The notes under the pieces: generated by a model
The model's database searches: none
The model's input: only the letters and a program-made list of their open reading frames with translations
Told to the model about the DNA's origin: nothing
Shown here: positions 1,962-48,078 of the stretch, in pieces
How the letters are laid out: the number at the start of each line of letters is the position of its first letter
Position numbering within the stretch: the stretch's first letter is position 1
Sequence record: OQ718158.1
Reading direction: 5' to 3' (one strand)
Length of the DNA: 64,000 nucleotides
Translations under genes and position numbers: made by a program

Positions 1962-3305
1962 ATGATGAGTAAAATCAAGCTTACGGATAAGCAACAAGAA
2001 ATTTTTGATAATTTTGTAGATCGTGTTTATAATTATGCAGGTAAAACTATATCTGTACTGTCAGCACCAGCGGGTACAGGTAAAACTTTCACTACTGCTG
2101 AGATTGTTAAAGCACTGTGTAAAAATTACAATATTGCAGTAACATCGCCAACACACAAGGCAAACTCTGTTATTCGCAATATGCTAATCAACAATGCTGG
2201 GTTAACTAAAGAAGATGCACAGGTTAGTACTATTCACTCATTTCTAGGTTTAAAACTAGTATATGAAAAGAATCGTCAAGTACTGAAGCATGACCCACAA
2301 AGTAAAGTTAGTAATACTAATGTTGATATTCTAATTGTCGATGAATGTAGTATGATTTCAGAAGAACTGTTTCAACACATTCAGGATCAATTGTGGCGTG
2401 TTCGCCGAGCGGTTTTATTCATCGGTGATCGCTGTCAGTTGCCTCCAGTTGAATCAGAAGGAACAATAGGAGAAACTAAGCTTTCCCCTGCTTTTGATGT
2501 TCCAGTACAATATGAATTAACAGAAGTTTTACGTCAAGCGTTGGATAACCCTATACTTGCAATTGCAACTGCAATCCGCGAGTGTATAGGTACTTCCAAG
2601 AACCCGTTTGATATTATGCACCAGACACATGGTCTGAGTACTATTACACCAATTGAAGATGAAGATCTTTTCTTGGAAGTTTACCGTGAATTCATTATGG
2701 AGAACAAAGGTTCAGCGAAGAAGATATTTGATTTTGTTAATGAAAATAAAATCTTGGCATACACCAACTACCGTGTGAACTTGGCTAACATCTACATTCG
2801 TAGCCAATTGTTTGAAGTACCAGAGGAATTCACAAAAGGTGAACCGATTGTCTTTGAAAGCATCACTGAGAACAGTCCATATGTGGTTCAACAAATCATC
2901 CAATGTCCTGATGTGAAAACCGAAAGTTTCATGGGTATTGATTGTTGGCAATTCCGTTTACCAAATGGTAGCTACATCTTAGGTGTAGGACCAGAAACGA
3001 GAATTGCAATGGAAGCTAAACTCGATGAACTAGTTAAAAACATTGAGAAAAAAGAAATCAACCCATTGACAAAGAAACCATATATGTGGCAAGATTACTA
3101 TGTGATTAAAAACAAATTACATATTATCAATTATCCTTATGCAACAACTGTTCACAAATCACAAGGAAGTACATTCGATAACATCTGGTTTGATACTGAT
3201 TTTATTGAGCGTATCGGAACTAACGATACAAAATGCAGAATCCTATACACTGCTATGACACGACCGCGTTACAATGTTATGTTGCGTCAGAATGCACGAT
3301 TCTAA
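1962..3305 (+). CDS. dda: Dda-like SF1B DNA helicase
   Basis: Walker A APAGTGKT, DECSMI, GDRCQLPPV, YATTVHKSQGSTF, LYTAMTR. Confidence 0.92.
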   Translation: MMSKIKLTDKQQEIFDNFVDRVYNYAGKTISVLSAPAGTGKTFTTAEIVKALCKNYNIAVTSPTHKANSVIRNMLINNAGLTKEDAQVSTIHSFLGLKLVYEKNRQVLKHDPQSKVSNTNVDILIVDECSMISEELFQHIQDQLWRVRRAVLFIGDRCQLPPVESEGTIGETKLSPAFDVPVQYELTEVLRQALDNPILAIATAIRECIGTSKNPFDIMHQTHGLSTITPIEDEDLFLEVYREFIMENKGSAKKIFDFVNENKILAYTNYRVNLANIYIRSQLFEVPEEFTKGEPIVFESITENSPYVVQQIIQCPDVKTESFMGIDCWQFRLPNGSYILGVGPETRIAMEAKLDELVKNIEKKEINPLTKKPYMWQDYYVIKNKLHIINYPYATTVHKSQGSTFDNIWFDTDFIERIGTNDTKCRILYTAMTRPRYNVMLRQNARF

Positions 3306-3978: not shown

Positions 3979-4173
3979 ATGACTGACAAAACCTTTTATG
4001 ATCGTATTATTGAAGACAAGGGTGTTTTCGATAAAGTAGTTTATGACTTAGAACTTATGATCAAAGATGCACCAAATCCACGCGTGCGTACTCAAGCAGA
4101 GTTTGCTAAAACTTATCTAGTGCAAGTTCAAGCAATCTGTGAAGCAATTAAAAAACATAATGATAGTGCTTGA
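3979..4173 (+). CDS. Hypothetical protein
   Basis: 64 aa ORF with GGAG RBS. Confidence 0.6.
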   Translation: MTDKTFYDRIIEDKGVFDKVVYDLELMIKDAPNPRVRTQAEFAKTYLVQVQAICEAIKKHNDSA

Positions 4174-41949: not shown

Positions 41950-42124
41950 GACATTTGATGAGTGGTTTAATCTACACTATAATATAAATGCAGCAGATAT
42001 ATACTATTTTAAGCTTGAATTGTATATATCATTGCGTAACCCAATTGAGTACTATAACAACATTATCAATTGTGATGATTTTGGTACATATTTTAGTATA
42101 GCAGTCATGGACAAAATAAGATGA
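41939..42124 (+). CDS. Microprotein, divergent MTxxEW-family member
   Basis: MQPKTFDEWFNLHYN..., 61 aa, ATGA-coupled to the next ORF. Confidence 0.5.
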   Translation: MQPKTFDEWFNLHYNINAADIYYFKLELYISLRNPIEYYNNIINCDDFGTYFSIAVMDKIR

Positions 42125-42291
42125 CACACAAAGAATGGTTAGATGAACTAAAATTTAAACATAATCCTTTTGGTTTTGGTATACGCCAAGGTCATTATGA
42201 TGTGTTAAAAGATAAACAACTTTTCAAATCATTTGTACTTGATGAGGATAGTAATCACTGGTACATCTATGAGCTTGCAATTAGGAAATAG
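42121..42291 (+). CDS. 56-aa MTHKEW microprotein (not in ORF track)
   Basis: Manual translation MTHKEWLDELKFKHNPFGFGIRQGHYDVLKDKQLFKSFVLDEDSNHWYIYELAIRK. Confidence 0.65.
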   Translation: MTHKEWLDELKFKHNPFGFGIRQGHYDVLKDKQLFKSFVLDEDSNHWYIYELAIRK

Positions 42292-43619: not shown

Positions 43620-43780
<161 letters not shown>

Positions 43781-43784
<4 letters not shown>

Positions 43785-43941
43785 CACATGAAGAATGGAT
43801 GAATGACATTAATTTTAGATATTCGGGTATCGGTAAATGGCTAAAGTATCATTGGGAATTCATTTCAGAGCCACATCTGTATGATAAACTTATCAACGAT
43901 CCAGCATATGAAATGTACTTAATTGAACTACTGGTACGAAT

Positions 43942-43945
<4 letters not shown>
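43781..43945 (+). CDS. 54-aa MTHEEW microprotein, array unit 2
   Basis: MTHEEWMNDINFRYSGIGKWLKYHWEFISEPHLYDKLINDPAYEMYLIELLVRI; ATGA-coupled. Confidence 0.75.
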
Positions 43946-44113
<168 letters not shown>

Positions 44114-44114
44114 G

Positions 44115-44535
<421 letters not shown>

Positions 44536-44540
<5 letters not shown>

Positions 44541-44565
44541 CTAAATAGTTCAGTACTGATATAAT
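44536..44565 (+). promoter_or_regulatory. Repeated promoter cassette copy 2, drives the ncRNA
   Basis: CTTGACTAAATAGTTCAGTACTG-A-TATAAT. Confidence 0.9.
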
Positions 44566-44571
44566 GAATTC

Positions 44572-44912
44572 CACAATCAGACGTATATGGTGTAAGTTAC
44601 GTCGATGTAATCCAGAACAAGATCTCTGGTACTCTAGGAAGTGGTGAATGTTAACCTAGACGGGTTTGATAATTGGACGATAGGCAATTATTACTTGACT
44701 AGCAGGTTTAAACTAGAGGTGACAGTCCTTTACCAAACTGGAAAACCGGATGGACTTTTATTTAAAAGGGTAAGGCGTGGAAATATGTTTACAGTAGTTG
44801 CTTTTAGTAGCCTGTACGCCCCACGTCAAGGTAGCCGAAAGGCAAGTTAAAACGGGTGGTTATAAAGCTGAATTAACAGCGGCGTTTAAAAGCGTCACCA
44901 TCCATTTTTTTT
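44572..44912 (+). ncRNA. About 340-nt highly structured ncRNA of unrecognised family
   Basis: Own promoter; GC-richer than flanks; helices GACGTA/TACGTC, CCAGA/TCTGG, CTAGG/CCTAG, GATAATTG/CAATTATT, GGCGTGG/CCACGTC, GCC-GAAA-GGC, GGGTGGT/ACCATCC followed by T8. Confidence 0.75.
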
Positions 44913-44928
44913 AATTAAAGTTGGTGAT

Positions 44929-45570
<642 letters not shown>

Positions 45571-45755: not shown

Positions 45756-46508
<753 letters not shown>

Positions 46509-46510
46509 AA

Positions 46511-46539
46511 TTGACATATCATTGGATGAGGTGTAATAT
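46511..46539 (+). promoter_or_regulatory. Sigma70-type promoter
   Basis: TTGACA-N17-TAATAT. Confidence 0.65.
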
Positions 46540-46582
46540 GGTTCAAGAAGAAAACTGGGGTTTTTAACACAAAGAGGCCAAT

Positions 46583-46629
<47 letters not shown>

Positions 46630-46654
46630 TGCTGCACCTATGCCTACTCTTGGC

Positions 46655-46725
<71 letters not shown>

Positions 46726-46726
46726 A

Positions 46727-46766
<40 letters not shown>

Positions 46767-46769
46767 TCA

Positions 46770-46882: not shown

Positions 46883-47290
46883 ATGGAGAACTATATGAAA
46901 GAAAAACGTTATTGTACATGTTGTAAAATTGAATTGGTTCGAAAGGGCCAAACAAAATATTGTAGTGTTGCATGTCAACAAGAGCTACAATATCAACAGA
47001 AAGTTGATAAATGGCTTAACGGTGAACATCCTGGATATAAAGGTATTACCATACAGTTATGTCCATTTGTGAGAAGATATCTACATGAAACACGCGGAAC
47101 TGCATGTGAAGAATGTGGATGGGATAAACGTCATCCAATAGATGGTGCAGTACTGACAGAAGTTGAGCACATTGATGGTGATGCTACAAATAATGACCTA
47201 CCAAATTTAAAAATCCTTTGCCCTAATTGTCATTCGATGACACCAACATTCAGAGCAAGGAACAAGAACTCCGCAAGGAATCGTAAATAA
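46883..47290 (+). CDS. HNH endonuclease (tRNA-adjacent, homing-type); start may be 46895
   Basis: CTCC..YCSVACQ zinc motif; CEECGW..EVEHIDGDATNNDLPNLKILCPNCHS. Confidence 0.9.
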   Translation: MENYMKEKRYCTCCKIELVRKGQTKYCSVACQQELQYQQKVDKWLNGEHPGYKGITIQLCPFVRRYLHETRGTACEECGWDKRHPIDGAVLTEVEHIDGDATNNDLPNLKILCPNCHSMTPTFRARNKNSARNRK

Positions 47291-47306: not shown

Positions 47307-47726
47307 ATGACATACAACATTGTTAAAATGGTGAACTACGTATTAAAAAACAACGCATGGTCACTGCATGATGTACAATTAGAAGATATTGGTGAAGTTA
47401 GAGTTTTTTGCTATGATGACGATTTGAACGAAACCACAGATTTGAGTAAATGTTTTAATATTTTTCTTGGTTATGAAATCGATAATCATTTTTATTCATT
47501 TGATGTGTATGTTGAACGAGTTAAAATCAGAATTTCTAATGTAAATAGTGATTATTTTGACACTATTATGATTGAATTGAATTTTGACGATATTGATACT
47601 GAAGAAAAATTCTTTCAGTACTGTCTCGTAAACGATCTAAATGGATTGACATTTGAGGACATTAAAGCTATACTTATAGTTCAAAGATTAATTCCAGAAG
47701 AGGTTATAAATCCCTTTAATGACTAG
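47307..47726 (+). CDS. EExxFQxSTVxD paralog family member 16
   Basis: TEEKFFQYCLVNDL. Confidence 0.7.
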   Translation: MTYNIVKMVNYVLKNNAWSLHDVQLEDIGEVRVFCYDDDLNETTDLSKCFNIFLGYEIDNHFYSFDVYVERVKIRISNVNSDYFDTIMIELNFDDIDTEEKFFQYCLVNDLNGLTFEDIKAILIVQRLIPEEVINPFND

Positions 47727-48078
47727 TTTAATAACTCGTATAATGCAAGATGTTCGTAAGAATCTTCATACTGGTAATTTTGATGATCCTAACATAAAAA
47801 TATTATGTTATGATGTATTCACACTGGTACACCCATCTGAATCTAATAATATATACATAGCATATACTTCTCCTAATATTTTGTATCAATTTGACTTATA
47901 TAGTACAATGGCTAAGATAACATTAGATGTTTCTAAGGAGCCATTTTTTATAGCAGTACGTGATTTTGAGTACACAGAAGAGTCATTATTCCAGTACTCA
48001 ATGATAAATGACATTGGTGACTTGACATTAGAAGAGATAAATGTTATAGTTGGTATGTGTCGTTTGATTAATCCATAA
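47719..48078 (+). CDS. EExxFQxSTVxD paralog family member 17
   Basis: TEESLFQYSMINDI. Confidence 0.7.
   Translation: MTSLITRIMQDVRKNLHTGNFDDPNIKILCYDVFTLVHPSESNNIYIAYTSPNILYQFDLYSTMAKITLDVSKEPFFIAVRDFEYTEESLFQYSMINDIGDLTLEEINVIVGMCRLINP

Follow-up and report, generated by a model that had tools for sequence, protein, structure and literature searches.

The question raised by this locus is whether one RNA gene, several RNA genes, a protein gene or a control element occupies positions 44536-44912 of a 64,000-nt stretch of record OQ718158.1 (the window). With its flanks, the interval matches Escherichia phages vB_Ec-M-J and Turkey3 at 100% identity and 121Q, PBECO4 and other Asteriusvirus jumbo coliphages at 97-99%. 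It is part of a tRNA island (tRNA-Ser, Ser, Met, Asn and Thr, found by Rfam and ARAGORN), and these five tRNAs were the sole Rfam matches at threshold in the window. An initial annotation had read the interval as a single multi-domain non-coding RNA of about 340 nt with its own promoter and a U-rich end. The best explanation reached here is that 44567-44912, on the plus strand like all features of the interval described below, holds two independent non-coding RNA genes sharing one promoter in Asteriusvirus (121Q/PBECO4-like) phages: module 1, a 189-nt structured RNA with seven hairpins and three pseudoknots (44567..44755), an A/U-rich linker TTTTATTTAAAAGGGTAA (44756..44773), and module 2, a second small RNA (about 44774-44912). 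Taken as a whole, with the two genes, the family and fold of module 1, its processing and role in trans, and module 2 all included, this explanation is considered probable. The evidence is strong that module 1 represents a real, structured, non-coding RNA family, and equally strong for the two-module architecture.

A blastn search of the full interval against 50,697 phage records returned only 121Q-like phages and the Klebsiella jumbo phages of the RaK2/K64-1 type (about 81% identity). The first half alone (44567-44753) was found at 85-91% identity in Bragavirus (T4-like phages of Proteus, Morganella and Shigella) and in the T5-like Novosibvirus Proteus phage 1, and the flanks of the module 1 copies are unrelated between Asteriusvirus, Bragavirus and Novosibvirus. 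In T4-like Aeromonas phages the core of module 1 is recognisable, without module 2. Module 2 has its own full promoter at the position of the linker in RaK2 and in the metagenomic loci L020 and L019 (L numbers are our locus labels); the RaK2 promoter between the halves reads TTGAAC-17-TATAAT. In L019, module 1 comes first, followed by an unrelated RNA of about 165 nt, then tRNA-Arg and finally module 2, and each of these four units has a promoter of 11/12 matches in front of it. The extra RNA of L019 (600-768, minus strand) is promoter-driven, has a 25-bp terminal stem and a minimum free energy of -53.9 kcal/mol, and has no counterpart in the window.

Because module 1 occurs alone and module 2 has its own promoter or is separated from module 1 in relatives, the halves were assigned to two genes. 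No covarying pair connects them, and that both form one working molecule of about 340 nt, as initially annotated, seems unlikely, even though they are adjacent in the window and in all 121Q-like phages. A scan of the window for promoters and canonical terminators found neither in the linker. Since nothing of this kind separates the halves, both modules are probably co-transcribed in the window, and a primary transcript of about 340 nt is plausible; this part of the initial reading can be kept, while the single RNA cannot. A search of the window for paralogues found none for module 1 or module 2.

The interval also contains an open reading frame (ORF) of 69 amino acids with a GTG start (44641..44850), which remains open in 121Q-like phages and is annotated in some deposited records. 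That it encodes a protein has a practically negligible chance of being correct. The frame is interrupted by stops or frameshifts in most homologues (PM2, RaK2, L019, L023, L024, L005 and the Aeromonas phages), substitutions over it show no third-position excess and are instead compensatory in RNA helices, and no Shine-Dalgarno match could be seen by eye. Moreover, the ORF bridges the junction of two modules that occur, and move, independently. It was scored as not a gene on the broken frame and the absent codon-position bias, and no conservation under purifying selection was found. The initial annotation had already regarded the ORF as unconvincing; its description of the interval as non-coding, structured, promoter-driven and part of a tRNA island is likewise borne out.

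For the fold of module 1, 18 distinct homologues were assembled from the phage collection, IMG/VR, one metagenome scan and one genome scan. Covariance model R1 was built on the 13 closest homologues and then used to align all 18, and in a second model, R2, pseudoknot A was put in place of hairpin H3; R2 aligned the most divergent 5' ends no better than R1. Both models score module 1 of the window at 234 bits, as the sole copy there. Over 56 pairs, 95.2% of the cells were standard pairs, compared with 24-41% when the partners were slid by 1-3 columns. Changes on both sides were seen in 38 of the 56 pairs (10-18 in the slid controls), the covariation score was 0.455 (slid controls: 0.05-0.08), and none of 500 shuffles reached any observed measure. 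The homologue search and covariation analysis suggested with the initial annotation thus came out in favour of a structured RNA. The fold first read for this half had, however, missed the three pseudoknots. These are absent from R1, which therefore cannot have biased their pair counts (84.7%, 100% and 95.8% of cells paired for pseudoknots A, B and C, respectively). H3, H5 and H6 were also recovered with compensatory changes by RNAalifold from a plain MAFFT alignment.

Each element of the fold is placed by covariation, with H7 as the weakest helix. Pseudoknot A (44568..44649) pairs the 5' end ATTCCAC (44568-74) with GTGG (44641-44) and AAT (44647-49) in the loop of H3; four of its seven pairs change on both sides, and its core reads CCAC/GTGG in the window, AGCAC/GTGCT in the Aeromonas phages, CCTCA/TGAGG in L024 and CTACA/TGTAG in L005. 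H1 (44576..44606) is formed by ATC-a-GACGT (44576-84) and ACGTCGAT (44599-606), with both-side changes in six of eight pairs (variants ACTAAAAT/ATTTTAGT in L023 and AGATTGTGTA/TACATAATCT in L024) and a conserved G-R-Y-G-Y-R motif in its loop. H2 (CCAGA/TCTGG, 44612..44629) is a peripheral hairpin varying from 9 to about 30 nt across homologues, with four of five pairs changed on both sides. H3 (TCTAGG/CCTAGA, 44633..44660), the loop of which provides the 3' strand of pseudoknot A, is paired in 99.1% of cells and all six of its pairs change on both sides. For H4 (GATAATTG/CAATTATT, 44668..44692) this holds for seven of eight pairs, and its loop GACGATA is invariant in 18/18 sequences.

H5 (ACTTG/CAGGT, 98.9% paired) and pseudoknot B together occupy 44693..44716. 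Pseudoknot B spans an A-rich loop and joins the H5 loop CTAG (44699-702) to a site six bases downstream, CTAG (44713-16), with the variants CAGG/CTTG in CC2, CTGG/CCAG in L024 and CAAG/CTTG in L023. H6 (GGTGA/TTACC, 100% paired) and pseudoknot C occupy 44718..44755, where the loop GTCC (44725-28) pairs with the 3' tail GGAC (44752-55) and the small hairpin H7 (44738-49) is situated between the two strands. Pseudoknot C reads GTCC/GGAC in the window, ACCC/GGGT in PM2, GCCC/GGGC in Proteus phage 1, ATCC/GGAT in Mm5 and TTCC/GGAA in L023 (pair variants GC, AU, UA and UA, CG). Covariation shows that pseudoknot A ties the extreme 5' end of the RNA into the H3 loop and pseudoknot C its extreme 3' end into the H6 loop. 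Besides GACGATA, the unpaired stretches GRCGGG (after H3), TTGAC, GAGGT and ACCA are invariant or nearly so in the 18 sequences.

Module 1 fills an unannotated gap between tRNA-Gly and tRNA-Asp in PM2 and SdyM_006 and between tRNA-Leu and tRNA-Ser in Proteus phage 1, and directly follows tRNA-Pro in the Aeromonas phages. In six sequence contexts (PM2, SdyM_006, Proteus phage 1, the Aeromonas phages, L023 and L024), homology starts 0-1 nt past the CCA of the preceding tRNA. It stops at the final base of pseudoknot C, and the next tRNA in T4-like and T5-like phages begins 6-16 nt past this end. In jumbo phages, including the RaK2-like ones, module 1 stands behind its own promoter with no tRNA upstream and with all conserved loops kept. 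The window promoter is of the sigma-70 type (44537..44565), with TTGACT at 44537, a 17-nt spacer and a TG-extended TATAAT (44560-44565), and its 11/12 matches agree with the strong promoter initially read there. Promoter-like sites in the region number 27 against 30.7 expected from shuffles, so the weight of this promoter comes from its score and its position at the conserved 5' end. The -10 hexamer ends 1 nt ahead of that end in the window, and the distance from -10 to the first base is 6 nt in L019 and 7 nt in RaK2. As either a tRNA CCA or a -10 hexamer precedes the same first base, the 5' end is set in two ways at one nucleotide. Around 44560-44574, the 121Q-like phages look to have lost about 5 nt between the -10 hexamer and the RNA start.

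A start directly at CCA could also mean that module 1 is a self-cleaving ribozyme, which cuts its own 5' edge and releases the 3' CCA of the upstream tRNA. The first nucleotides enter a pseudoknot, as they do in HDV-like and glmS ribozymes, and the size, the pseudoknots and the many invariant unpaired bases would fit a catalytic RNA. A precedent is given by the HDV-like theta ribozymes of gut phages, which are placed directly 3' of phage tRNAs (PMC10879173). Module 1 shares this position except in jumbo phages, where the promoter replaces the tRNA, and it is these promoter-driven copies, with every conserved loop intact, that weaken the ribozyme explanation. The distance from CCA to the pseudoknot core also varies, from 2 to 5 nt, and no Rfam ribozyme was matched. 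A theta ribozyme has a minimal fold of the HDV-like type, in which about 50-70 nt form a nested double pseudoknot, whereas module 1 has 189 nt and another topology, with three separate H-type pseudoknots; an HDV-type nested fold of about 50-90 nt was rejected, also as no HDV family was matched in Rfam. To our knowledge, T4 tRNA arrays mature without ribozymes. Self-cleavage was on balance judged improbable.

The sequence comparison shows that module 1 has spread horizontally among unrelated virulent phages (jumbo, T4-like and T5-like). The family is rare, since relaxed DNA patterns on IMG/VR gave 22 extra loci which were all rejected by R1, leaving no further members; matches of a first pattern in L021 and in Pseudomonas locus L025 had likewise proved false with R1. 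All its members come from phages that infect Enterobacterales or Aeromonas and from a few metagenomic contigs. No match to module 1 turned up in 5,426 complete E. coli genomes, and plasmids gave one chance match of 32 nt. In L023, two diverged copies (2105-2284 and 2422-2608, minus strand) flank tRNA-Arg(ACG), with helix changes compensated and loops kept. In the Asteriusviruses G17 (L049 1505-1582), phAPEC6 and ECO103 4-12-1, the promoter and 36 nt from the start of module 1 survive, and the remainder of module 1, module 2 and the terminator are deleted. This remnant in a natural deletion variant indicates that the ancestor of the genus carried the RNA and that at least some phages can do without it.

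The initial annotation had recognised no family for the interval, and this was confirmed. With Rfam 15, no family covered it at the gathering score, and in 44300-45100 nothing above 15 bits was found at E<=10; six divergent homologue loci gave no match over the module 1 coordinates. ARAGORN and Rfam found no tmRNA in the window, and a tmRNA was rejected for module 1, which has pseudoknots without an acceptor or T-arm. Resemblances to the RNase P P4 region, the SRP Alu domain, Y RNA, the preQ1-I pseudoknot, the ToxI antitoxin, 23S GTPase-centre RNA, a CsrA sponge and a Shine-Dalgarno-like GAGGTGA were all rejected, being short motifs only, base-paired or not covarying as required, and with no Rfam model matched. 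The RNA arrays of UG27 reverse transcriptases were judged unrelated, as they belong to other loci, in prophages of Bacteroidota. No description of module 1 was found in Rfam 15 or in full-text literature searches. The family, its fold and its distribution across lineages are new, while the general kind, stable RNAs accompanying phage tRNAs as in T4 and T5, is known.

The nearest parallels in position are the T4 species 1 and species 2 stable RNAs (rnaC and rnaD), which are small, lie in the tRNA cluster of a virulent phage and directly follow a tRNA gene (tRNA-Arg, then rnaD, then rnaC). Module 1 homologues show the same placement abutting a tRNA, and the window copy stands behind its own promoter in the tRNA island. 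Module 1 is, however, larger than rnaC and rnaD, has three pseudoknots and lacks the tRNA-like T-arm in which rnaC ends (CCGGGTTCGAATCCCGG). R1 and R2 gave no match at E<=1 in T4 69000-75000, MAFFT produced no meaningful alignment, and blastn searches with rnaC and rnaD found no match in the window or in any of the loci, so these RNAs were rejected as relatives. The T5 stable RNAs rnaI, rnaIII, rnaIV, rna1, rna2, rna2H, rna3 and rnaX are interleaved with tRNAs, some behind their own promoters. The T5 record (L050 10285-21567) lists eight genes as 'stable RNA with unknown functions', among them the 719-nt rnaX directly upstream of tRNA-Arg; promoter P13b, followed by rna2H (172 nt) and tRNA-Ala, is an example of the arrangement. 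They follow the same genomic logic without homology to module 1 (best R1 score 12.6 bits, for a partial alignment with filters off; no significant blastn match), although module 1 does occur in the T5-like Novosibvirus. GOLLD and ROOL are ornate structured RNAs often found in phage or prophage DNA beside tRNA genes. They measure 500-800 nt and form multimeric cages (bioRxiv 10.1101/2024.12.08.627333). Neither was matched by Rfam in the window interval.

Module 2 begins with hairpin A (44774..44827), in which GGCGTGG (44774-44780) can pair either with ACGCC (44816-20) or with CCACGTC (44821-27). Covariation in seven sequences supports hairpin A, an inner hairpin and both arms of the Y-shaped junction described below. 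The three strands of hairpin A read GGTGTGG, ACACC and CCACATC in L019, where the 5' strand changes from C to T and both partners from G to A, and GCTGTGG, ACGGC and CCTCAGC in Kuravirus XT18, where two positions change and both partners follow. The alternative pairings of GGCGT proposed at first thus both hold through the changes in these two sequences; they are conserved and mutually exclusive. Because in every lineage the outer pairing exceeds the inner one in stability by 5-8 kcal/mol, the inner one may be a co-transcriptional intermediate or a switch state. The hairpin A homologue of XT18 (Escherichia phage vB-EcoP-XT18, L010 2501-2554) is situated in an unannotated gap of 790 nt (2014-2802). 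Short motifs shared with module 1, GACGATAT and CAGATGGA, follow it there; neither R1 nor R2 matches the gap, which may hold undescribed RNAs.

Next to hairpin A, a GCC-GAAA-GGC hairpin (44834..44843) is present in six jumbo-phage sequences; it shows one-sided changes only, so covariation neither supports nor contradicts it. Module 2 ends in a Y-shaped three-way junction (44854..44912), with a 7-bp closing stem (GGGTGGT 44854-44860 / ACCATCC 44897-44903) followed by A and T8 (44905-44912) and with the arms GCTG/CAGC (44867-70/44877-80) and GGCG/CGTC (44881-84/44893-96). The tetraloop hairpin, the junction and T8 had all been placed correctly in the initial annotation. The junction was, however, interpreted there as a terminal domain of one RNA, and it corresponds instead to a recurring terminator/promoter repeat. 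By its repeat copies and its G+C-rich stem and U-tract, as in Rho-independent terminators although with a branched stem, 44854-44912 is a probable intrinsic terminator belonging to a repeat family. It was not reported by the simple scan, the pattern of which allows only loops of 3-8 nt.

Copies of the Y element are dispersed in the tRNA islands of RaK2-like phages, where they follow tRNA-Ser and tRNA-Arg and also lie directly upstream of module 1 (RaK2, L009, 2440-2495 and about 4098-4149; L020, about 370-425 and about 1753-1814), and each of the three helices shows compensatory changes among the copies. An 11/12 promoter coincides with the copy ahead of module 1, its -35 lying in arm 1 and its -10 in the closing stem; this promoter reads TTGACA-17-TATTAT in RaK2 and L020, whereas the matching hexamers of the window copy are only TTAACA and CACCAT. 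Promoter-terminator cassettes named PeSL mediate modular shuffling in T4-like phages (PMC2839356, PMC4122927). The Y element may be analogous, as it is repeated and flanks small mobile units in a hyperplastic region, and the RaK2 copy combines a terminator-like structure with an early-type promoter. It differs in being a three-way junction rather than a simple stem-loop, and in residing in jumbo phages (Asteriusvirus or Alcyoneusvirus). By this analogy, the Y repeat may explain the movement of RNA and tRNA cassettes.

The two pairings of hairpin A raise a further explanation, in which the interval would be a cis-acting leader, a riboswitch-like attenuator of the ORF at 44929-45300, with the pairings of module 2 controlling the Y terminator. 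Both mutually exclusive pairings do covary, T8 lies 17 nt before this ORF, and a freed CCAC could, as read from the sequence, pair with GTGG of the terminator stem. This anti-terminator pairing would comprise only 4 bp, the Y element, as a generic repeat, is found after tRNA genes too, and module 1 lies between tRNAs elsewhere. In L019, module 2 has its own promoter downstream of tRNA-Arg and is followed by another tRNA instead of this ORF. Attenuation was therefore regarded as quite improbable, more so than either a single RNA or a ribozyme, and two RNA genes with a shared promoter in the window remain the preferred explanation.

Several points weigh against it. Relative to shuffles, the folding energy of the whole RNA has a z-score of -1.82, that of its first half -0.75 and that of its second half -2.5, which means that module 1 is not separable from shuffled sequence by folding energy alone; thermodynamic folding being weak evidence, the case for structure rests on covariation and the comparison with other phages. 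Within the fold, support is weak for H7 and for the outer AAT/ATT part of pseudoknot A. A usual start 6-8 nt past the -10 hexamer would remove the CC of pseudoknot A from the window copy, so that its mature 5' end may come from an upstream transcript or the copy may be slightly truncated. The ends of the transcripts, their stability and their processing are predictions. The analysis of module 2 comprises seven sequences from three lineages, no protein gene consistently adjoins the module 1 RNA, and the function assigned to module 1 is a guess.

With this in mind, a route of maturation can be proposed. By its position, module 1 would be transcribed inside tRNA arrays in T4-like and T5-like phages and from its own sigma-70 promoter in jumbo phages. 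In the arrays, its ends would be cut by the tRNA-processing enzymes of the host, which is a reasonable inference: cleavage by RNase P at the downstream tRNA would free the 3' side, and RNase P or RNase E could cut at the 5' end. RNase P is a candidate there because pseudoknot A stacked on H3 (about 13 bp from nucleotide +1) presumably resembles an acceptor/T-arm stack, and RNase E because the A/U-rich AAUU flank may resemble an RNase E site. Exonucleases might then trim the RNA back to its pseudoknots, leaving a stable particle.

With low confidence, a role in trans is suggested for module 1, in which the folded RNA would bind to a protein or to another RNA from the translation, tRNA-metabolism or anti-phage apparatus of the host. 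This suggestion is based on the invariance of unpaired bases in distant phages, on horizontal movement together with loss in some close relatives, and on the full fold being kept where no tRNA precedes module 1. Conservation, lateral transfer and occasional clean loss are typical of accessory host-takeover and counter-defence genes. That module 1 is a decoy or binder directed at host translation, tRNA metabolism or RNA-targeting defence is a tentative possibility, appreciable although well short of even. Somewhat more doubtful is the proposal that it forms a new catalytic or decoy RNA class exchanged horizontally, together with tRNA genes, by unrelated virulent phages. In the catalytic variant it would be a ribozyme acting on tRNA-array transcripts, and in the decoy variant an RNA mimic neutralising a host defence that targets RNA or tRNA. 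Strong conservation combined with clean deletion in sister phages would follow from either role.

Other features of the window were noted in passing. Inside the tRNA island, three tandem ORFs of 54 amino acids with 4-nt overlaps (43620-44106), all starting MTHEEWM..., are mutual paralogues, and a fourth paralogue of 56 amino acids (MTHKEWLDELKFKH..., 42121-42291) lies 1.3 kb upstream of them. Between an ORF and tRNA-Thr, 530 nt (46238-46769) without a convincing plus-strand ORF could hold an RNA gene; a promoter-like TTGACA-17-TAATAT is found inside this gap (46511-46539). Directly after tRNA-Thr, an ORF of 135 amino acids (46883-47290) contains cysteine pairs and an HNH-like motif (HIDGD...N...NL..LCPNCH) and probably encodes a homing endonuclease. 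Homing endonucleases are common in phage tRNA regions. The adjacent ORFs of 139 and 119 amino acids at 47307-48078 look paralogous, with similar C-terminal parts (...LTFEDIKAILIVQRLIPEE and ...LTLEEINVIVGMCRLINP).

The stable RNAs from the tRNA regions of T4 and T5 have been known for decades and are still unexplained. Module 1 adds a third such family, unrelated to them, whose well-supported and unusually elaborate fold has three pseudoknots and 56 base pairs in 189 nt, and it comes with a record of horizontal transfer across three phage lineages and with natural presence/absence variants. The family is tractable because sister phages with and without the RNA can be compared and because the fold is small enough for probing or cryo-EM. 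The results also call for a database correction, as several GenBank records label the region a hypothetical protein. Should module 1 turn out to be a ribozyme or a decoy against host defence, the conflict between phages and their hosts would have a new RNA-based tool.

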